This document shows positions 24,001-49,700 of a stretch of 64,000 nucleotides of DNA, piece after piece (position 1 is the first letter of the stretch; every line of letters begins with the position of its first letter). The stretch comes from Convolutriloba macropyga (Eukaryota). Under the pieces are notes generated by a model. The model was not told the origin of the DNA. It did not search any database and worked only from the letters and a program-made list of their open reading frames with translations. Location: contig NC_134472.1 in the NCBI RefSeq assembly GCF_964194025.1, positions 57,474,001-57,538,000 on the forward strand. Direction: 5' to 3'. The translations under genes were made by a program, and so were the position numbers.

Positions 24001-27000
24001 TTGAATTGCTTTGCTGAGCAACTGATGTTCAAAATCACATTTAGCAGAATGAGAGAAGAGAGAAACTAGCCTAGAGAAGTCAAAAAGATATCACGCAAAA
24101 TGTTGAAAAAGCGGCAAAATGAGGTAAAGCGAAACATTTTTTTATTCGACGAAGTAAAAAAACATAGCAGGACAAGTCCTGACGTACAATTCAAAGAATT
24201 TTCATTGACTTAACAGAAAACTACACCAAAAACGGACTATGAATGGATTGGAAAAACCATTTAGAAAAAAAAATCGATACAAAAAATCGAAAAAAAACAG
24301 TAAAAATCAGAAAGAAATTGCCGCATGTGAACAAAAAACACCGTTTTCTCACTCTACTTTAAATTTAGAGCGAAAAAATTTCACGTCGCAAAACCACTCG
24401 CTTTTTCGCTCCAATTCCTGTTTCGGCGTGACCAAAATCACTACTCCAATTTGACTTCAAAAATCATGAAAATGCGTGAACAGATCTTAAAAAAGACAGC
24501 GCCCCAATACAATTCAAATTCTTTGAATTGTTAAAAAATAGGAGCGCTATAATAGCCGGCTGAGAAGATGAGGGCGGCTATTAATCAATCAAAATCTAAA
24601 AGTCAAGCGAAGTGAAATCAAAAGAATCTTCAAGAAAAAGTCAAGCAAAAATTTTGCATAAAAAGACACAGACACGCGAAAATTTGGCATCCAAAAGTAT
24701 TTCATGGAATTGATTTTTAGGTACAGAGAGCTGTAAAATTATACAGTCACTCTAAAAACACAGTCATTCACCTTCTTTAAAAAACCGGAAATTGCATTAG
24801 CTTTGCTCAGTCGTGACAATGTTGTCGTGAGAAACTCATTCTGACGCAGCGAGATTCAGAATTGCCATCAAAATTCAAAATTTACTGAGTTTCCATGATA
24901 GTTCTAGAGGAACTTTATGCAGCTAACGAGTACAATGCTAAAACTGTTACAACAAACACTTACTGACCCTAGTCAAGTTATATCTTGGTGCAAGAAATTA
25001 TTTACGGATCAGCCGACTGCTAATTACAATGGCTTTTTAATATACTGTAATGCGTTGAAAAGTGAGACAAAGAACAGACAGGACTAACCGACTGGCTCTA
25101 AAACGTGTTCATGTAGGATGTTTTTATGAGCAACCACGTCCTATATGCATAATGTCAAATATTGTCATGCTATCGCTCACTTAATAGCGCAGGTTAAGAG
25201 GATATCAACTATCACGTTAATACTCACGATATCTTTATCCTGAAATCAGTCTGTAATAGACATCAATCCCTCATGATGACTTACATATGTCCCATTTTGA
25301 GCAGACCCAATATGAGGTGATAATTTGTCATCGGACCACACTACCAATCAGGTAAGGCAGAATGGATAATTTAAAAAGGAAATGTTTCCTCCTCCCGTCA
25401 ACATTGTTTCAACTTCCTGGTGGAGAAATGATATGCAACGGATAGTTCTATATATTAGCAGATTATAATGTCTTACCAAGTCGAAATGATCTATTAATTG
25501 GTTCAATTTAAAATTCAGAAAATTCTGTCCCTTAGGATGCCAAAAACTGAACTCACGGGGAAGGAACACCCGCAAAAACCAATCGAATTATTTCTTCAAC
25601 TAATTGGATCTAAATTTGGATTAAAATTTGCGAATATGAGGCATACTACTTCTAACTCTAAACTTAGGAAGCAGCTTAGAGGATAAATGTTCTGAAGGTA
25701 AAGATATCCACAATTTTTATAAGCAGAATTTGAAAACTTTACGACAATAATAATCATACAAAGATGGGGAAAGTGGACACAATGCGGATAACTCTTTAAC
25801 TCCCTTCAGCACACATACTGTGTATGAAGAAAAGCAGGGCGAAGGGAGGGCTCATTTTATGCGCAAGGGTACTAAGACCATGAGGATACCCACCATGGTG
25901 ATATTTCCTGTGACTTGGGTCACTGGCTTCAGCACATTAATGACAGCCACGTATCTCTTCTTTTGCGCAATCATGAGCGGCGTCGCCCCCGTAAGGGTCT
26001 TGGCGTTGGGGTTGGCACCCTCCCTCAGCAACAGGTCAACCATGGCTGTGTTGCCCTGGTGTGCCGCTATGTGCAATGCAGAGTGCCCTGCTTCGTTCGT
26101 GTCGTGTACGGAACAGCCCACTCGCAACAGGTATTTCACAACGTCCATGTTGTCTAAACACAACAAAGTTTCAACAGGTCAGAATTAAAAGCCCTACTTT
26201 CAGTACCTTAAGACGCAGAGTCATAGTTTTCCTATTCTACTTTACTGATCCAGAAGGTCACAAATTTTATTACTGTGACCAATATAGTTGGTTAATTTTT
26301 AGTTCTAAATAGTAAACATTTTACTTTGGAATTTTTCAATTAAATGCTTAGAAAGACCACACAACCCACACGGTTCATCAGAAAGCGTATGCCGGGATAA
26401 AAACAAAATGAAGTCTTTAAAATTATACATCAAGTTAGCATGACCACTGAGTCATGCAAATAACGATTATTGCAAGAATCCTGATTGTCTCAACTATTTT
26501 AACATCACAGCAATCCGTCCAAAAACTCTTTTTAAAGGCAACCTGTCACATCTAATTCACTCGAACTTCCAATTGACCTCTGAAATTTACAGCAGCCTCA
26601 AGCAATTAATGTGGAACCACTTTTGCACGGTTTCGTCGCAGCCGACTAAACGCAAATTGTAGTACATGGAAACTAAGCTACAAAACTCGCAAATTTGATC
26701 AAAATATTTCCACACATGATAATTCAAATTGCACATTACCATCAAAGCGCATGAAATAATTTATTTCACTTTGAAGACTTCAAATTGTATCATAACTTCT
26801 CAACTCGACCAAAATAGAGTAGAAATAGAAGTTAGTTAGTAGAAATTATAACCCGGGAGACTTATTCTACCAACACACGACAACTCAATAGCAACTAACT
26901 GAGCTTAGAACCTCCGATCTAGCACTAGATTAATACCACCACACAACTCACTTTTCTCTTTCTTGCATTTCACAACTTAAACGCATTTGTAGCTAGCACC

Positions 27001-34700: not shown

Positions 34701-37700
34701 ACACAATACATGAAATCAATTCATTACAGAGAGGAAACATAACATTTGAAAGGACACTCTCCGCTACTTTAAGATGCAATTTTAAGTGAGCAAAAACAAA
34801 TTTCGCAGAGAATTTTCCGATGCGATGTGATTTTTAACCGAATCTCTTTATGTTGTATCTAGTACTGCTGCATTTTTTCAGCTATTCTGCTTCAAGGAAT
34901 CTATTACAATCACTATTAAAGTTCACTGCGGACAACGAGCCAAAAAGCAGGAAAACATATTGCTGGTCTCAACGACATCTGCAGCATCTCAACTAACCGC
35001 AGTAGCGATTTGAGGATCTCCTTTGGAGTTGACCAGTAACTGAATCATGTTCAGATGCTTCTCTCTAGCCGCCAAGTGCAGAGGTGCAGTGCCATTATCG
35101 TTAGTGGCGTTCACATTCGCCCCGTACGTGATCAAATTGTGCGCATCTTTCCTGTTGTCCCTCTTGGCCGCAATGTGAAGGGGCGTGTAGCCATTGCTAG
35201 CAACGCAGTGAGGCGACGCTTTGCATTGCAGCAGAATGTTTGTAACATCGTGGTGCAAGTAATGTACAGATACGTGCAGAGGAGTTAACATGAGTTTTCC
35301 AGCCAAGTCTGGATTCGCGCCGCTTTGTAGTAACACTTGGGCTACTTGAGGCTTGTCGTACTTGGCTGCCAGGTGTAGAGGTGAAAGCTGCTTCTTCGTG
35401 AGACAGTTGGGCTCTGCTTTGTTCTGCAGCAGATACTCCACGACAGCTGGATGACCTGAGACATAAATATCACTTCAAGAGTTAAACAGCACTCAAAAGA
35501 GGTTAAATGCGGCAAAAAGTTGCTGACTCGAACTTCCCGACAGAGATATCTGAGAATACCAGTATCTTTTTCTTAACAGAAAGGTTAAAGAAAAAATAGT
35601 TTCAAATCAAAAATTAAAGAAGTAGTCCAATTTTTTATTGAAATTCGACCCGAACTTGACAATCATTATCATGTAAAATCTGAATATCCATGATAATATA
35701 GAAAAATTTGGGGTGCTCTACGGCAGATATAGGATCTCTCTCAACCTTTTTTTTTTTTTATATCCAATCATAAATTTAAGGTGTGCTTGGTTGTGGAAAT
35801 CATGGTTTAAATCATTTCTAAGTTCAGTCAATTCTCAGAAAGTTTTCTTGCGATCAACCTTGTGCCCACAAATCACCATGGCGCCCACGCAATTGAGTAT
35901 TTGCCTTTTATTTGTTCCCACAAACCCTCACAATCGGGTCTTCAAAATTTCTTCAAAATCAACCCACACAATCGGGTTGAACAGAAGAAATGAGCATTGT
36001 CCCCGCTCATTGGGTGACAAACAAGTTCGCGCACAGCAATAACTGGGCAACTAAAATTGGGTGAGTCAACACTGTAAATTAACTATTGTGGGGCTGAAGG
36101 TGTTGTCGCAGGAATGAGTCTCATAACAGGGGATCTCTGGCGATCAGCATTGTGGCTGAACCTCTCATTAAAGTCACTGAGACTCCTTGAGATAACCGAT
36201 TGTAGGCAACTGATAAACCAGCTGGTTGAAAGTTTCGGTTATCGGCAAGCAAGGCTATACGTTTCAAAGTTTTCCGGACCAAATCTGAGAAGCCCCCGAA
36301 AGATTCAAACGCGAGTGGTACAAACTGGATACCTATTTCGGCACATTTTTGGGCATATTGTTCATATTTCCTATCTTCAGCATTTGTCAGAGCAAAACCA
36401 CACCTCCTCGCCGCATCTGAAATTAGACTGGGCTGCAGTGGGGAAGTTATGGTCACGTCTAACGCAGATGGTTGTCCCGCTGACCAGCTTGGCAAGTATA
36501 TGTCTCCTGGCCTTGAGTTATTATCTGGAATCAAATTTTTCTGTTCGCAGACGGGTGATAAGTTTGCGGTCGAGCAAGCAGCAAATATTCTATCCCTCAC
36601 TCTATCGTGCCGCGATATCATATCCCCCCGACCATGACAGCTTAAAGCGTGATCACCCAGCTTGTCCAGTCTGCCGTTTTGACAGTAAGGGCACTTTCGT
36701 TCCTCAATGTATAACGGAACACCAATCCGATACTTCAATGCGGCTCTGAATTCATTTGGCTGAAGGTGAAGGCCCAGACTAGGGATTGGAGGTGCGGAAA
36801 GCCAGGCACCAGATTGAGGCAACGTTAGTGAAAGCAAACGAGCTTTCTCCCGATTTGAAGTCTGATTACCAAGAAGGTCAGAAAAAGCAGCATCGTCAAG
36901 TGCCTCCTGAATCTTGTGTTGCGTATATTGGCTAATTTCTAGATTCTTCAGTTCTTCCACTGTTTCTTTGAAAATTTGATTGTCTGTAATTTTCTCACCG
37001 GTTATTTGTTCCACTAAAGCGTCTGCCTGCGATACTGACCCAACAAACGCCGCTTTCAATTGGTCAATTGCTTGTCTAATTCCAACGCCAGTTTTGCTTA
37101 TTGGTAGACAAGCCTGCTTCCAAGCGTTGTCACTTATAAGGGTGCCTAACATATTCTCAAATGTTGTTCTCTGAAGCTTGTCAAAATCCTGCAAAATAAC
37201 AGAGGATTCGTCAGATGGAGTGTTACATCGCAGGGAATATACCATCTTTGGGGCACCAAGACAGCTTCGAAGAATTCCAAGCGCACAATGTGGGTCGTCT
37301 AGGTACGCCAAGTTGTCGAGCAGTTTTTCTATTTTGTTGACTCTTTTCCTCAAAGATGCAGCAACAAAACTGGGATTGCCGATGGCAGCGCCCAAGATCT
37401 CAAGTCCTTCTTTGCTATTTCTTTTTACTCTGTTATCTATAGCGTTCAGATCAACGGGTGACCAAAGCTCACATTTTTCTATTCTGAGCTCTAAGCCGCA
37501 TCCTTCACCCAAATTTGTCAACAAATTCAATGCTGTGCAAAGTTGTTGGTGGGTACCAGCAAGGATGCCATCATCCAAATACCAATTATGCTGTACTAGA
37601 TTTGGTAACTTTGTTTCAATTTCTTTAATGATTGGCCACAGAGCTAGTGAAAACAAAAGCGGCCCCAAAGGATCCCCTTGTTGCACTCCCGATTGGCTAC

Positions 37701-40700
37701 TTAAGTATGTGTTGTTAAAATGCAAATGACTGTGTTGTGAGTAGCAAAAAGTCGCAAAAGGGGCAACACTAGGTAAGAATTTTGCGACTGCTTCCAAAAC
37801 CTTGCTTCTTTTTACCGAATTGAAGGCATTTTTGAAATCAATCTGCAATATTCCGGAATTTTTTGACCTTTGCAGTTTTTCAAAGGAAACTCTTGTTGCA
37901 TGTACTATGCCCTCAGCACCACCCTTGACTGCTACCCCCAATTGTTTTGTGTTAAAAAGATCAGCAGCATCTGAATTCGCTTCACGAGCTATGCATTTAG
38001 CAATAAGACGTCGAATGACTTCCCCAACAGCGATAGGACGGACCCCACCTTTCAATTTTTTCAATGCAGTTATTGTTGCACTGCATAGTATAGGAGCAAC
38101 AAATTCGGGAAGCTGACCCCTGCTAGCTAAGTTGACAAATTTTGTTAAACTAGTGATTGCTCGCTTTGATTGATCAGGGGCACCGCAGTTTACTGCATGC
38201 AGCAGATGCTCGGGATACATTTTTGACGGCCCAGCTGCAGTAAATTTGGAGAACGACTCGATTTGGAAGAATACTGATGCCTCGTCAAATTGATATGCGT
38301 TCGTGTTAGCATCTTGATCAAATTGGTGGTCAGGTTGCTTTTCTTTAGGGTGGAGCTTTTTAAGTTCATTCAACGTTGCAGCATTGTCAGGTGCAACGCC
38401 GTCAGAAGACAGAACTTTCGCTGCCCTCCCAAACTGCCCCTGCAGACAAAGAGATTTCGCGCGGCTTGCTAAGGCGTCTATTGACTCATTGCTAGTTTTA
38501 TTTGACTGCTTCATTGAGGCCGCCTCGTACCACAGTGCAGCATAATCACCTGATTTCCATCGCTCAAGTCTGCTCAACAACTGTTTCTCTTGCTGCTGCT
38601 TGTGTTTCTTACCGCCACGATTAGACGCGCGTAGAACACATTTGCTAATTGCAAAGAGCTTTTTCCAATTCTCTAACGATTGCGCGTGTGAAATGCAAGC
38701 ATCGATAACGGATGTTAGTAATTCTGACCATCTCACCCGAAACTTTACAGGAATGAACCTTAGGGTAGGGATGTGCTTACTGCTGATGGTTTCGAGATCT
38801 GGGAGTTCATTTAGATTTATATCTGTTGTAGCTAGATTTGGTGAACTCGCGGATTGCACAATCTCATCTATTCGCTTAGCTAAATCACGTGGTATCTTTT
38901 TCACTTTAGACAGTAAAGGCGTAAATTGCGAGTAGGCCCATATTGATTTGGAGCACACCATCTCATCGAAGTTCGGTCCCCACTGGTCATATCTAATTTT
39001 AGTTTTTCCAAGATGATGTTCGATAACAGATATCTGGTACAGTTTATCCTTTTTGTCGGGGTAGAAAAGTGTTGTTTTGGGGGGCACTTGAAAGCGGGAA
39101 GTGTTGTCATCAATTATTAAATTATTCATTTGCTGAGTCAGTCCCGAAGATAAATTGCATTGTTTTGCCCCCTGACTAAGCTCTGTAGTATTGTTAGTCT
39201 CAGCTAACGAAACCTTCTTGCTTTCTCTAGTTTTCATAACTGTTAACATTGAATGCGCAATTGCCTATCAAGTTTTTTTTTATCCAACCAGATAAAAAAA
39301 AACAAGGGCGGGGGTCGTTTTGGTTAGATCTCACCGGTTTGAGGTCCACAAAAGCTGCTGAAGAACCACTACATAATTGATTTGCTCACGTGCACATTGC
39401 TTCTGATATGATAACAGTAAAAAAAAAAGTTGGTGGGGGATCAATCTAGGGTGCTCAAGATTCGGTGTAAAATTTGTTTCTATTTTCGTCTTGCTTGTTG
39501 AAATCAAGAGAGCAACTTGAACGCACGTGGATTTACAGAATCTTCAAAACTTTCAAATTCTCACCTAATTCTTCCCAATAAGTGCCGGGATCCTTTTTTC
39601 TGAAAACCCCAATTTCCCGTACACATAACTCGCAACAAACTTTTATGGCATTTCATCTCGTTCAGATTTTTCTAGAGTTAATTTCTAGCTCAACTAACCT
39701 TCCCGGGTGGCCATATGTATTGGCCGGTAGTTGTCTAGAGCTTCATGTTCCACATCAGCCTCTCTCTTCACCAGTAACTTCGTCATATCCAGATCTCCAT
39801 TCCTCGCAGCTATGTGCAGTGGTGTCAATTTTTCAAGAGCTTCTGCGTTCACGTCTGCGCCTAAAACAGTTCTCAATTCATGAACACCAGAGAAGACTTT
39901 GGATTTTTTCTTTTTTTATAAGACGACTGAGGAAAGAAAGTCTTTTTATTTCAACAAGAAGGCCGACAAATAGGAAACTAACAACATTTGAATCCTCGTC
40001 AAACTATCCAAATTGCTCAAAGATCACCTGTAACGACGTTAACACTAAAGCAGATATCATTAATTTCAAATGATGCATACAAAACCTTTGTCAAGCAGAA
40101 GCTGTGCTAAGTTGTAGTGTCCACCCCTGACTGCGAAATGCAAGGGTGACTCGTAATAGTTCTTTGTCTGTACATTAGGCCTTGCCTTGCAGTCCAGAAG
40201 TGGCTTTGCACACTGAAAATAAACCATCATTCAAATTATAAAACGTATTTAATAACTTGTTATATTATTACCTAAACGCAATTATTACCTTGTTATAAAA
40301 CGCTATTATTACCTCGCAATTACGTTTTTAATACCTTCAATCTAAGCGCACTTGAAAGAAACTTACATCGTCAAATCCGAAGAAACAGGCAACATGCAAG
40401 GGTGTCATTCCACTCTCATTGGGGATGTTTGGATCCGCATTGTATTCTCTCAACAGAAGCAGAATAATTCTGATTCGTCTCTTCTTTACTGCGATATGCA
40501 AAGCTGCATAGCCATTCTAAACAACGAGTTTTCAGTAAATTCAGCATGGAACAATTATTTATTTCTTAAAACTGGACCAGCCTATGAAGCTTCTAAAAAA
40601 TGGTACAAGTACATACAGTAAAACATAGCTGACAGATTGCCAGAAAATAGCCGCAATAGCTTCGTAGATCTGCAGTCTCAAAAAACAGTACAAAAGACGG

Positions 40701-43700: not shown

Positions 43701-46700
43701 GATCGCAAAAATCTGACCTTTTCTACGAAAGCCTTTCAAATGATTCCTACCTACATTGACTGCACAATCTCTTCGTAATACACGCATTTTAGTTTCGCTA
43801 GTTACAGTTTCATCTAATTATTGTCCGGACCACATAATTCTGATTGCTCTTGTTGGAAGATTTACCTTAGTTTTGATTTTATGATCTGCTCCCTTGACCA
43901 ACAGTTTATCCACTACTTCATCATGTCCATTCCTGCTAGCACAGTGGAGACCCGTCAGGCCATCCTTTGTTTTATAATCAATCTTCGCATTCGAATTCAC
44001 AAACAACTCCACCAAATCCACCTTGCCCCATTTAGAGGCCACATGTAGAGGCACTATGCTGTTCTTAGCAGCCTGGTCAATGTTAGCACCGAAGTTAATT
44101 AAATGATTAGCTATCTTGTAATGACCGTATCTGGCTGCAACGTGCAAGGGTGTGAAGTTAGTGGATGACATAATGTTAGGGTCGTATTTCTTCGTCAGAA
44201 GGAGCAACGTTGATTTCTCGTCGTTCTTTCGTACTGCTACATGTAGGGCGGGCAGTTTATACCCCTTCTTGGAGTGCTCTGCTTCTAAGAGGGTGGCTAC
44301 GATCTTTGCATGCTGTTGTTGAAGAGCAACTGCTAAGGGAGTAAATCCTTCCTAAAAACACAGTTTTACCAATATATCTTTGCAGTTCAGGTAAAATTTA
44401 AACACTTATTTATTGATTTCGACAACAATCTGTTTTCTTGTAGCGGATTTTCAGAAAAAAAAACTGCTCAGAAAGTAGCGTAAACTTCAGTTAAATTCAT
44501 TAAACTTTTCCCGTATTTAAACACGACTGCTGAACTGTTCCCGGGTTGGAGTCCCATAGAATCCCATCGATGGGTCATAGTTATTTCATAGTAGCTTTTA
44601 GATCCATCGATGGATCAGTGTAATTTCATAAAACCTAACTTCCCATCGATGGATCAGTGTAATTTCATAAAACCTAACTTCCCATCGATGGATCATAGTA
44701 AATCCATGAAAATGAAAATTTCGAAAATCTCACATGTTAATCAATTTTCTTAAATAAAATGCAGTTACGTGCCCCTAAATGCCTCGTTTTTAGTAACGTG
44801 TCACCAAAAAGAGACCAAAAAAGAGCTGTCGTGGGGGGGGGGGGGCATTGCTTCAATTGGTTCAATTGTTATACCGGGCATTGGTTCAATTGGTTCAATT
44901 GTTATCAGATACTTTTCGCAGGTCATGTCTCAATAGTCTTTTTTTTTCAGATATACTGATTGATTGCGGCAGAAGTCAGATGTCATTATCCACACAAAGG
45001 AAAGAACGAATCGTGAGTTGGAAACGTTATTTATACCCAGCATATTTATTTTATTTACCCAGCTTAGTAGGTGCATAGTATTTGACGCACGGGCTCTACA
45101 TAATGATTTATTATGTAATGGCACGTGCTCTGTAACTGGGGGGGGGGGGGGGCATAACGTACTGGAGGGGGGGGGGCATAACGTACTGGGGGCATAACGT
45201 ACTGGGGGCATAACGTACTGGGGGCATAACGTACTGGGGGCATAACGTACTTCTATTATATCTAATAGATTAGATATATTAGATCTAATCTATTAGATAG
45301 ATTAGATCTAATATATCTAATCTATCTAATATATCAAATCTATCTAAATTATCTATTCTATCTAATATATCTAATCTAATCTATCTAATATAACTAATCT
45401 ATCTAATACATCTAATCTATCTAATATATCTAATCTATCGAATATATCAAATCAATCTAAATTATCTAATCTATCTAATATTTCTAATCTATCTAATCTA
45501 TCTAGTACAAGAGAGAAAATGTTTTTTCTCTTTCAAAAAGCAATGGCTAGCAGTTCTGAAGTTGTCATGATCCAGAGGAATTCATGGTAAGTACATAAAA
45601 AGTTTCTATGAATCAGAGGAACTCATGCTTAAATCATAAAAGTTGCTATGATCCAGTGAAAATCATAGTAAGTACATAATAACTAATCTATGATCCAGAA
45701 AAAATCATAATAGTATCATGAAAGTTTTTTTATGAACCAGAGGAAATCATTACAATTTCATAAAGTTTTCTATGATTTTTCCATGCCCAGCGTTAAATGG
45801 TAATGGGACATTCAATGATCCATCGATGGATTTCTCTGAAATTCCCATGATCCATCGATGGGATTCTATGGGACCCCAACCCGGGTTTCCAATTGTTCCA
45901 ATCAAAGCATTGACGTGGAAATTTAATGGAAATCTCATCACCTTATACATGGGCACTGTTACCTTTTAAAATTAAAACTAAAATACCCGCTATGTCTGCC
46001 CAGTAAAAATTTGCCAATAAAGCGACATCTGCTTTTGGAATTCAACCGCTCAGTTATTGACCACTTAAAAGCATGTATTTAGACCGAACACATGAATAGC
46101 ATTTACAATGGCAAGTAGTCTTTTGTTTTCAGCATTAGTTCAAGTATTAGCGGCTTTGCTAGCCACCTTAATCGCACTTCATAAACATACGAACAAAAAT
46201 TGTTTAAAACACAGTCCCAACTCTGCACAAAAATCAATCACTTTTACTTCTCACATCTGCTACAGTTCAATAAAAGCAACCAATCGAATTTTGATCATTT
46301 AATGTAAATTCTTAATCAACTACGAGAGTAAAATAGAAACTGAAAAGTCTAGACAAAATGTGCCACTACTTCAATGCGCTTTGTCTATTAATCAACTACG
46401 AGAGTAAAATAGAAACTGAAAAGTCTAGACAAAATGTGCCACTACTTCAATGCGCTTTGTCTATTTATCAGCTGTTGAGAGCACGCGCAATTATTTTAAC
46501 GCCAAGAGCGTCATATACTGCATAAACGACACGAAATGCACCGTAGCGGCGCGTAATTCAAAAAAATTCCAATAGCAGAAAAATTAAAATCAGATATAAC
46601 TGATTCAGCTAGACTGTACGTTTCCGTTTGTATTGCATCATAATCAGTAATTCTAAAAGTTAACATATACAACACAAATTACAATACAAACAGGAAGACA

Positions 46701-49700
46701 GTGCAAACCTAGGTATTCACGGAAACGTTTAGTGACTCTGGTACGTTAAACGTCAAAATGTTGGAAAATTAATACCGCAAATCTTTTGCGAGTTTTTCTA
46801 CGAGTAGTGAGACTGTATGAAATGGTTGCTAAAAATTGGTCAAACATATCTTTCCGGGTCATAAGATATCCTCGATCAAAACTGATTACAGCAAAAACTA
46901 ACTACAATTGAACATCAAAGCATTCATAAATTTCGATTTTTCGCTGAGCAACTGATAATCAAATTCACTTTTAGCAGAATGAGAGAAGAGAGAAACTAGC
47001 CTAGAGAAGTCAAAAAGATTTCACGCAAAATGCTGAAAAAGCGGCAAAATGGTAAAGCGAAAAAAAGTTCGACGAAGTAAAAAAAAACATAGCAGGACAA
47101 GTCCTGACGTACAATTCAAAGGATACAAAAAATCGAAAAAACAGTAAAAATCAGAGTGAAATTGCCGCATGTGAACAAAAAACACCGTTTTCACACTCTA
47201 CTTTAAATTTAGAGCGAAAAAATTTCACGCCGCAAAACCACTCGCTTTTTCGCTCCATTTCCTTTTCCGGCGTGACCAAAATCACTACTCCAATTTGACT
47301 TCAAAAATCATGAAAATGTGTGAACAGATCTTAAAAAAAAAACAGGCGGAAGAATTCCGGAAACGAATCGAAGTGAAAATCCATTTAAACGCCATTCAAC
47401 TACTCATCAAACCAAACGTGCCTTCAATAATTTATGATTATCTTGAAACAAAGTCATGAAACGAAAAAGTAAAAACAATAAAATCAAATCTGTTAAAATA
47501 TGATAAAAAATCTGATCAAATTTTGTTATAAATTGAGATCCCGAAAAAACTATCTCTACCAAAATAATTTCATCAAAACAACTAGTACTTATAAAAACCA
47601 CTTATGTGAATTTTGAAAATACTTTAGGCTAAATTATGAAAAAAAGCTCTTAAAAACAACTTTCACTGAAAAACTGGAAGAAAAACTGGAAGAAGAAGTT
47701 ACTAAATTTTTTAGTATTTCAAAAAACATATAAATCCCAGAAACATTCCCTTCCTCCAATAGGGTATCCAGATGCTCGCAAAACAATAGGCAAGTCATAA
47801 TAGGCAAAGAAACTTAGCTAAAAACAAAAAAAAACGAAAAACTGCAAAAAAAAATTAAGAAAAATAGTTCCAATTTGCGCCATTTTTGTCGTATTTCTCA
47901 ACAAAAAATGAATTATCATAAAATTTATATGAATTTCTAGAAACCTTCAAACCATTACTGAAACCAGCCAAAAATTAAAACAAAATCATAACCAAACCTC
48001 TGAACGAAAATAAATAAAAAAAAACTGCTTTAAAATGCCGCACGTGAAAAAAATTTCGCTCGCTTAGAAAATTTTTTCACACATCAATTTCTCGCTCTCT
48101 CAAAAACAGCGGTATGAACAAAAACCACTCTCTTTTCGCTCCGCTCTTCACTTTTTTGTTCAGCACCAAAATCACTCCAAATTTTTTCACGCGTTTCATT
48201 TCCCGCTTCAAAAATCACTCCAATAAAATTGATTTAAAAAAAGAAAAGGACTTCTCCAATACTCCTCTTCGAGTCGTAAAAAAGACAGCGCCCCAATACA
48301 ATTCAAATTCTTTGAATTGTAATAAAAAATTAGGAGCGCTATAATAGCCGGCTGAGAAGATGAGGGCGGCTATTAAAAACAATCAGTTGCCTTTTGACGT
48401 GCTTAAACAATTTCAATGCACTTGTACCGCACTTGCAAGTTTTCGTGCAGAGGCCCAAGTGCAAAATATAACCGACAAACGTCGGAAGAAGTACTCTCGA
48501 ACAACTAGTGGGAGCTAAAACCTATTGCAGCCTGCTTCAGTGTTTTAAAAAATCACTTCAAATGACTGTTTTCAGAGGCTACTATATACCACTTGAGTTC
48601 AGATACTGACACTTGTCAAAGAGAGAAATTTAGATCACGCAGAACGAAAAAATTAAAGGCGTAAAAGTAACTCGAAAAGTCGAAACAGTTTGCAAAACCT
48701 TTATGGCTTAACAGTACTCGCTTTTCGCTCTTTTTAAAATAAAACTCCAGCGTGACTTAACTCAATACTCCAATTCATTTTTTTTAATCGACGACATACA
48801 GTGAAAAGTGGGGACAGATTTTGCAGAGAAAAGAGGACAGTACCACCAATACAACTCAAATTTTTTGAATCTTTAAAAGGCTCGCAATGATAGGCCACGG
48901 TTAAGATGAGGACGACTATTAACATTTAAAAAGTATTTGAAAAATTATCAGCAAGAAAAAACATTGAAAGTAGTAGAAATAAATTGATAAAATAGAAAAT
49001 CAAGTTAGGAAAATCATTCAAAGTTAGGCGGTTAAAATTCGAGTTAAAAGTATTCATATGGTACCACGTTTATTTTTCTAGCATGCGTATAAAATGTAGC
49101 TTGGTCAGGAGAAAAAAGCCAGACTCGCGTGCGTGGACATTCCACCTTTTCTAAAGAAATGTTGAACAAAAAAGTTCAAATTAGTCGTAAAGTAGGCGCC
49201 AAATGTCATAGCAATTTGATGTTAGGGGCTTAACAAAATACTTTCTCAGAATTCTATCATTGTTTTTATTCCTATACTTTTCAATGGAAAAGGCTTAGGT
49301 TGGAATAGTTGTTGTCACTGTCAACGTCCACGAATAGAGGAAAGGCGTTTTAAAAACAGCTCAAACAAATCCACACAACTTCATTTGGCCATTAGCAAAT
49401 CGGAAACTTTGCAGCATTAGAGATTTGCTTACCTCAGTAGTAATTGTTTCATCTGCTCCTTTGTGCAGAAGATACTTGAGCACTTCCAAATGGTTTTCCT
49501 GCGCTGCCATGTATAGTGGAGTGAAGGAGCCTTGGGCTTTTGAGTTGATGTCACACTTCCGTTCTACTAGTAATTTCACTACTGTCAAATGTCCCGCCAA
49601 AGACGCAATGTGGAGGGCTGTGTTGCCTCTCTGAAATCCACATCCCGAATGAGACTACTTCATTTCTACTTTCTAATTTTTGAGCTGAGAAATCAATCCC

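Follow-up and report, generated by a model that had tools for sequence, protein, structure and literature searches.

We report that a young retrotransposon of the acoel Convolutriloba macropyga encodes, near the N-terminus of its single open reading frame (ORF), a small domain that very probably adopts the Tudor/chromo-barrel-like fold of the Royal family. The element lies at 35747-39538 of a 64-kb stretch of the genome (contig NC_134472.1, positions 57,474,001 to 57,538,000 of the forward strand), which is referred to here as the window; positions follow the numbering of the window and features lie on its minus strand unless stated otherwise. Its closest structurally known relatives are the R2 proteins, members of those retrotransposons without long terminal repeats (non-LTR) that carry a restriction-like endonuclease (RLE). 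Such elements are the standard example of sequence-specific insertion by way of an N-terminal zinc-finger or Myb module, and R2 is now engineered for gene insertion. The best explanation of our findings as a whole, to which we assign a probability of roughly 0.5, is that the Royal barrel acts as a reader of histone methyl marks, tethers the ribonucleoprotein (RNP) of the element to chromatin and has replaced the sequence-specific DNA-binding module. The barrel is the only recognisable non-catalytic module of the element and sits where its relatives hold DNA-binding modules.

The element is composed as follows, with the basis of each assignment in brackets (aa, amino acid; UTR, untranslated region).

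35747-39538, minus strand: whole retrotransposon copy of 3792 bp, with 5' UTR, single ORF, 3' UTR and poly(A) (empty-site allele and ends of copy similarity)
39250-39538, minus strand: 5' UTR of about 289 nt, without an upstream ORF1 (alignment of more than 20 copies)
36121-39249, minus strand: intact ORF, 1042 aa with the stop codon counted (ORF listing)
39106-39144, minus strand: conserved GLTQQ..L.IDD motif, aa 36-48, immediately N-terminal of the barrel module (present in all subfamilies)
38848-39096, minus strand: predicted Royal-family (Tudor/chromo-barrel-like) module, aa 52-134 (alignments A1 and A3, AlphaFold2 model, fold and profile searches, hhalign)
38968-39039, minus strand: putative aromatic pocket formed by Y71 (39037-39039), Y87 (38989-38991), W90 (38980-38982) and F94 (38968-38970), followed by D95 and E96 (hhalign, conservation)
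37390-38061, minus strand: reverse transcriptase (RT) core, aa 397-620 (Pfam RVT_1, E-value 3.5e-17)
36187-36696, minus strand: C-terminal CCHC knuckle (C853, C856, H867, C871) and restriction-like endonuclease with RHD, RPGD and LDVT motifs (profile A4)
35760-36120, minus strand: 3' UTR, extending to ...GATTGGATAT (94-100% identity to 39 further copies sampled from the genome)
35747-35759, minus strand: poly(A) tail of 13 A on the element strand, directly after ...GATTGGATAT (read from the sequence)

The full open frame is also retained in several other genomic copies. The 5' ends of more than 20 aligned copies differ by a few bases around ...CACGTGCGTTCAAG, and the 5' and 3' limits of similarity to other copies fall at about 39529-39538 and about 35747-35766, respectively. 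A Pfam scan of the whole ORF at E-values up to 10 returns RVT_1 alone, without a zinc finger, C2H2, Myb or Royal-family model, in agreement with the first-pass annotation of the window, which had described an RLE-type element lacking N-terminal C2H2 or Myb domains. Among PDB sequences, R2 proteins are the best matches of the RT (E-values 4e-9 to 1.6e-7). The C-terminal 200 residues find nothing in the PDB as a single sequence, and R2 is reached there by the family profile only: A4, built from the C-terminal region of 18 relatives, matches the R2 knuckle and RLE (9nl3_A, 4.8e-10; 9dou_A, 6.2e-10; R2Bm 8gh6_A, 0.0078) over the C-terminal 165 residues of the R2 proteins, aligning CxxC...H...C, RH(D/N), (R/K)P(G)D and DVT(V/I). 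Because both the RT and the C-terminal knuckle and endonuclease match R2 proteins, we classify the element, by sequence homology, as a single-ORF, RLE-type (R2-group) non-LTR retrotransposon.

The N-terminal module is a conserved and constrained part of this protein. The first-pass annotation had placed a chromo-barrel or Tudor-knot at 38935-39093, and translation confirms that these positions are residues 53-105 of the 1042-aa ORF and that Y71, Y87, W90 and F94, then D95 and E96, stand at the spacing it gave. That span lies within the module and falls short of its full length: the block conserved between copies lies behind a short, variable N-terminal stretch, runs over about aa 52-134 and comprises a barrel and then helices. 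The first 150 residues of the ORF recur, 44-100% identical, in more than 150 genomic copies that fall into at least five subfamilies, and in alignments A1 and A3 the conserved block reads LFYPD-KD-LY--V------K-(I/V)RY--WGPN(F/Y)DE(W/M) and continues further. A host exon fused to the ORF by mis-annotation was considered and ruled out, the module being in frame in those copies and in several subfamilies. Constraint was compared between the ORF of the window and the intact ORF of a subfamily 65% identical to it (L031), using nonsynonymous divergence (dN) alone since synonymous divergence is saturated between subfamilies. The values are 0.23 for the module (aa 53-134), 0.28 for the RT, 0.30 for the endonuclease and 0.83 for aa 1-52, so that by this measure the module is constrained as strongly as the catalytic domains.

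Conservation of the pocket residues was counted over 44 sequences, decayed copies among them. Position 71 is aromatic in 41 of these and position 87 is Y, F or H in as many; position 90 is aromatic in 40 (W in 39), position 94 is F, Y or H in 38, and D95 is retained in 41. The expectation that the cage residues would be kept across copies of the family is thus borne out, with 38-41 of the 44 sequences holding an aromatic or equivalent residue.

Several kinds of sequence comparison point from this module to the Royal family. Profiles of A1 and A3 were searched against the sequences of the PDB, where 13 of 14 and 26 of 27 matches respectively are Royal-family chains (E-values 0.01-2), including MRG15, EAF3, PHF20, L3MBTL1/3 and ARID4A; HMMER places the module segment on KYFIHYSGWNKNWDEWV of MRG15. 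Against 1.84 billion representative proteins, the matches of A1 outside transposable elements are multi-MBT, Tudor-knot, MSL3-chromo-like and Agenet proteins at E-values of 1e-7 to 1e-4, and the matched segments overlie domains that Pfam recognises on its own (P0036, 1194-1247 against Tudor_4 at 1203-1255; P0040, 135-178 against MBT at 145-183; P0046, 173-201 against MBT at 169-206). The chromo-barrel genes of the host, chosen independently by Pfam models and aligned as A2, score 71% (P 3.8e-5) with A1 and 88% (P 3.2e-6) with A3 in hhalign, which pairs D-LY...RY--WG-N-DE-V of the module with DQLYEAKV...HYNGWGNRHDEW of a host MRG15-type gene. Finally, related elements come close to, or cross, the curated thresholds of Pfam: the N-terminal domain of P0203 passes the Tudor-knot cut-off (22.6 against 20.8 bits), nearly passes those for MBT and MSL3_chromo-like, and aligns without gaps to A3 over 49 columns (P 8.5e-5); the domain of P0073 matches MSL3_chromo-like at an E-value of 2e-4; and other subfamilies give MBT, MSL3 and PWWP matches, all below threshold.

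Recent capture of the module from the MRG15 gene of the host was considered and ruled out on the identity of about 23% between them and their differing hairpin lengths. As a separate observation on chromo-barrels in this host, its genome holds a gene fragment with an identical Tudor-knot/MSL3-like chromo-barrel three times in tandem, at a spacing of about 5 kb (…GKIYPAKILKID…YYIHYKNWNARHDQWISEDMI; G000:C11:22797274-22807381, loci L066-L068 and L071-L073).

Structure prediction leads to the same superfamily. An AlphaFold2 model computed from the 44-sequence alignment (md67d84004609) reaches a mean predicted local distance difference test score (pLDDT) of 86.8 and a predicted template modelling score (pTM) of 0.76, with strands at aa 60-64, 69-79, 82-87 and 96-99 and helices at aa 100-107, 110-113 and 121-132; an earlier model from 21 sequences (pLDDT 75), which has a helix in place of the last strand, was set aside in favour of this deeper alignment. 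Foldseek against the PDB gives as its top matches MSL3, the first Tudor domain of PHF20L1 (root-mean-square deviation, rmsd, 1.5 over 48 columns), MRG15, MBTD1 and L3MBTL. All-against-all structural alignment gives the MRG701 chromodomain (Z 6.9, 66 residues aligned) and MRG15 (Z 6.4, 72 of 83 residues), followed by the Tudors of SETDB1, SMN and PHF20L1, while the Swiss-Prot part of the AlphaFold database gives MSL3, MRG15/EAF3, ARID4B and PHF20L1. Royal domains are therefore the top structural matches in three libraries, and the model has the form of an SH3-like barrel. Its helices follow directly on the last strand, and the alignment to 2f5k_A extends over 72 of 83 residues and that to 5in1_B over 66 of 71, with the plain Tudors (SMN, PHF20L1, SETDB1) less than one Z unit away.

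The pocket of human MRG15 is formed by Tyr26, Tyr46 and Trp49, and a long helix follows its barrel (PMC1747190). Through the hhalign pairing of LY, RY and W with LY, HY and GW of the host MRG15-type barrel, Y71, Y87 and W90 correspond to these three residues, and F94 stands where the NWDEW motif has its next Trp. The module thus has, as judged from alignment, aromatic residues at the canonical Royal positions, which form a putative pocket. Since the PDB profiles, the search of the 1.84-billion library, hhalign, the AlphaFold2 and fold searches and the Pfam matches of relatives all agree, we consider a Royal-family fold for aa 52-134 highly probable, and the barrel with pocket aromatics that the first-pass annotation had read by eye finds good support.

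Several observations weigh against our reading, some bearing on the fold and others on the function. As to the fold, a Pfam search at E-values up to 10 with the domain of the window and those of two sister subfamilies returns no family at all, and the Pfam models for Tudor-knot and MSL3_chromo-like, run against the whole genome, find the host chromo-barrel genes and miss the copies of the transposable element; of the tools proposed in the first-pass annotation, AlphaFold and Foldseek thus support the barrel and Pfam does not recognise it in the copy of the window. Word-indexed protein searches restricted to the domain, from either the window ORF or P0203, found no matches, and a feature search of the ESM Atlas gave no usable match. 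One of the library matches, P0043 (E-value 2e-6), is a TPR protein reached through the helical part of the module, and E-values for repeat proteins must therefore be taken as inflated. Only one of five AlphaFold2 models is confident, the other four having pLDDT values of 55-67; the first model resembled generic small barrels only (ATPase N-terminal domains, SlyD); and Foldseek E-values of 0.009-0.1 and Z scores of 6-7 are middling when taken alone. On such grounds the resemblance could be superficial, the segment being a lineage-specific structural spacer or an extension on the N-terminal side of the RT, in which the 'Y..W...DE' motif occurs by chance and no reader-type function exists. Four independent kinds of search, however, converge on one superfamily, a relative passes a curated Pfam cut-off and the segment is constrained like the RT, and we judge a chance resemblance to be very improbable.

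The function is a more open matter. Chromo-barrels and Tudor-knots can bind RNA or DNA, and Tudors of the SMN type bind methyl-arginine; both the methyl-arginine Tudors (SMN, Z 6.2) and the nucleic-acid-binding Tudor-knots differ from the MRG matches by no more than one Z unit, so that neither the ligand class nor the MRG subtype is fixed by structure. Moreover, the subfamily of the window has Met97 at a position that is Trp in 26 of the 44 sequences and Met in nine. Even in MRG15 itself the pocket is partly occluded (PMC1747190).

A barrel that binds nucleic acid, in the manner of the Tudor-knot or chromo-barrel of Esa1 and MOF or as a general DNA binder, would hold the RNA of the element or its target DNA while target-primed reverse transcription proceeds, and would read no histone mark. 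The Pfam title of Tudor-knot, the model that P0203 passes, is 'RNA binding activity-knot of a chromodomain'; the Esa1 and MOF barrels appear among the structural matches (ranks 29 and 40); the module is basic in most lineages, with an isoelectric point (pI) of about 9.1-9.3; and DNA-binding modules (C2H2, SAP) occupy the same N-terminal position in related elements. On the other hand, conservation is highest at the pocket aromatics and the adjoining D-E rather than at basic surface residues, one subfamily has a neutral module (pI 7.0), and the nearest matches, MRG15, MRG701, PHF20L1, L3MBTL and SETDB1, are methyl-lysine readers. Taken together these points leave a nucleic-acid binder unlikely, though deserving of serious consideration.

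The Asn of the SMN motif VY-xx-YG-N contacts methyl-arginine, and to our own reading the RY-xx-WG-P-N of the module resembles that motif, N93 being present in 27 of the 44 sequences. A methyl-arginine reader of the SMN/TDRD type would dock on host Sm, PIWI-pathway or other RNP proteins and might aid in assembling the RNP, in nuclear entry or in interfering with silencing. Its structural case consists of the SMN Tudor 1g5v (Z 6.2, rmsd 1.8, 53 residues), 4qq6 (Z 5.9) and TDRD3 (Z 5.4), which lie within about one Z unit of the best MRG match. Against it, the A1 and A3 profiles rank MRG15, EAF3, PHF20, MBT and ARID4A and have no SMN or TDRD chain among the PDB matches listed, N93 is replaced in several lineages, and DEW-V is a motif that chromo-barrel, MBT and PHF20 domains typically have. 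We regard this possibility as decidedly unlikely. That the barrel is a reader of methyl marks remains our prediction, held at about even odds.

The distribution of the module among relatives gives some view of its history. Full-length relatives at 45-65% identity all contain it. In relatives no more than 35% identical, which stem from dinoflagellates, a sponge, other protists and metagenomes, its place is taken by Cys/His-rich or C2H2 fingers, SAP or Ulp1: SAP in P0117 and P0121, the Ulp1 peptidase C48 in P0119 and C2H2 in P0087, P0095 and P0102, where all but one of the C2H2 matches fall under the curated Pfam cut-offs. Judging from these sequences, the N-terminus seems to be a hot spot of module exchange. 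In a maximum-likelihood tree of the RT-RLE part, which covers the present relatives only, the six Royal-bearing ORFs form one clade with support of 100/100 and the relatives bearing zinc fingers, SAP or Ulp1 lie outside it. This tree is most simply read as a single gain of the module at the base of the clade, and the replacement of a zinc-finger-type module, which the first-pass annotation had envisaged, is parsimonious because the more distant relatives carry N-terminal modules of the C2H2 type.

Related Royal-bearing elements were found in two other assemblies, ERZ25878734 and ERZ25071281, and the order of parts is not the same throughout. The acoel families have the GLTQQ motif, then the Royal module, then a TxRxxP motif; in P0203 and P0073 a 2A-like peptide is followed by the Royal module, the GLTQQ motif and the TxRxxP motif. 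This difference implies that the module either moved within the ORF or was acquired a second time. Neither the N-terminus of P0073 nor the host gene beside P0203 has a match in the C. macropyga genome, and the two elements therefore come from other organisms. The 2A-like 'ribosome-skipping' motif, LLLLCAGDIE(R/S)NPGP, lies at residues 60-78 of P0073 and 65-82 of P0203 (loci L063 and L075), upstream of the Royal domain, and the acoel families are without it.

The insertion in the window can be defined to the nucleotide. Contigs from three of four public DNA runs (X1, X3 and X4; all four runs with the element behave as genomic DNA, and no RNA run turned up) contain an empty-site allele that joins 35746 to 39539 with CAGTCTTA, eight other letters, in between, and the depth of this junction equals the single-copy depth of the flanks. 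The limits of the element are therefore exactly 35747-39538, 3792 bp, and the eight letters of the empty allele indicate that 8 bp of target were deleted on insertion. As the empty allele persists in public DNA, the insertion is recent or polymorphic (or heterozygous). No convincing target-site duplication was seen among three copies with both flanks.

The surroundings of the element, as found by a six-frame scan for ankyrin motifs, are these.

34992-35474, minus strand: host ankyrin-repeat exon region, downstream in the direction of the gene (limits are those of the open frame, not splice sites)
40340-40516, minus strand: host ankyrin-repeat exon region, upstream in the direction of the gene (limits approximate)
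25855-26178, 43818-44207 and 49364-49654, minus strand: further ankyrin-repeat exons of the same large gene

Because ankyrin exons on the same strand flank it on both sides, the element lies in sense orientation inside an intron of the ankyrin gene, as the first-pass annotation had it. The poly(A) tract of the element is thereby carried into that intron. One intronic copy is no evidence of an insertion preference.

The family to which this copy belongs is recently active and dispersed. Copies that are 97-99% identical indicate recent activity, as does the empty-site allele, and the summed depth within the element is hundreds of times that of the flanks (flanks at 30-60, element in the thousands), the 3' end exceeding the 5' end 5- to 20-fold. 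This excess and its 3' bias fit hundreds of copies with frequent 5' truncation. The length of the A-run varies among the other copies and, together with the variable 5' ends and the skew of depth to the 3' end, displays the hallmarks of target-primed reverse transcription. More than 35 ends of other copies, 5' and 3', were sampled, and their flanks are all different and share no common target sequence; the family is thus dispersed, without a repeated target, and the earlier statement that the element does not sit in a multicopy target repeat holds good.

With these properties in hand, the mechanism that we favour may be set out. The barrel would be a chromatin tether, binding either a histone tail through one of its methylated lysines or the nucleosome; once bound, it would bring the RNP onto chromatin, where an endonuclease without long sequence specificity would nick the DNA and target-primed reverse transcription would follow. 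A reader of chromatin would thus stand in for the sequence-specific DNA-binding module. The parts of this scheme differ in how far they may be trusted. That the reader affects the choice of insertion site is possible, though we would not call it probable. Rather more speculative is the evolutionary version, in which the clade swapped an ancestral zinc-finger module for a histone-mark reader that steers target-primed reverse transcription to one chromatin state, with a single origin at the base of the clade and retention in several host genomes, and which would make these elements the first non-LTR counterpart of chromovirus-type integration; this is unlikely to hold in every part. H3K36me specifically, the mark offered as an example in the first-pass annotation, is a long shot.

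Comparison with known systems delimits what is new here. With R2 and other RLE elements (R4, NeSL/Utopia, CRE, HERO) the element shares a single ORF with the RT in its centre and, at the C-terminus, a CCHC knuckle with a PD-(D/E)xK-type endonuclease, as well as poly(A), 5' truncation and the loss of 8 bp of target without a clear duplication; it differs from them in having a probable Royal-family barrel in place of an N-terminal zinc finger or Myb domain. RLE elements have N-terminal zinc fingers and sometimes Ulp1, and CRE, R2, R4 and NeSL are mostly target-specific, while many of the HERO families are non-specific (Kojima and Jurka 2015, PMC4640811). Unlike the target-specific groups, the family described here is dispersed. 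The CRE clade (CRE1/2, SLACS, CZAR) inserts into multicopy targets such as spliced-leader genes (PMC4640811), whereas the copy in the window lies in a unique intron; in target specificity, the one CRE feature compared, the element therefore departs from the CRE-like character that the first-pass annotation had given it.

The module itself shares with the chromo-barrels of MRG15, EAF3 and MSL3, the Tudors of PHF20 and PHF20L1 and the MBT domains a predicted topology of barrel then helices, the pocket residues and the motif W-x3-(F/Y)-D-E-(W/M)-V. Identity to these readers is only about 12-23%, however, its beta2-beta3 hairpin falls short of that of MRG15 by 4-6 residues, and the module belongs to a retrotransposon ORF rather than to a subunit of a chromatin complex.

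The chromoviruses of the Ty3/gypsy group provide the nearest concept, that of a mobile element equipped with a reader-type domain of the Royal superfamily, here known from sequence and a model. Their integrase chromodomain guides integration to marked chromatin, and chromodomain-guided integration is discussed for LTR chromoviruses only (bioRxiv 10.64898/2026.05.21.726589). The present element has an RLE and target-primed reverse transcription instead of an integrase, ends in poly(A) and is without LTRs, and its domain is chromo-barrel/Tudor-like at the N-terminus of an RT protein, as against an HP1-like chromodomain at the C-terminus of an integrase. It is not a chromovirus, and the likeness between the two would be one of analogy only. 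A full-text search of articles on non-LTR or RLE elements together with Tudor, chromo barrel or chromodomain found none with such a domain inside a non-LTR ORF; earlier cataloguing in Repbase or Dfam is possible.

Should our reading be correct, RLE elements can alter the logic of their targeting by exchanging one N-terminal module, and a Royal-family domain would have been recruited by retroelements a second, independent time, after the chromoviruses. The family is young and the copy in the window still polymorphic, so that insertion preference can be compared directly with histone marks in Convolutriloba, and a domain of 80 residues is small enough for peptide arrays and for structure determination. 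Were its ligand RNA, DNA or methyl-arginine instead, the domain would still be an undescribed accessory module of non-LTR elements.

Two minor observations concern the surroundings of these elements. The P0203 element has as its neighbour a pol gene of the Ty3/gypsy type with RVT_1, RNase H and rve domains (locus L075, 1-912, minus strand), in a locus rich in transposable elements. In the window, ORFs of 100-210 aa run antisense to the element ORF, on the plus strand, at 36114-36749, 37178-37729, 37802-38116 and 38600-38935, and look like by-products of the long sense frame.

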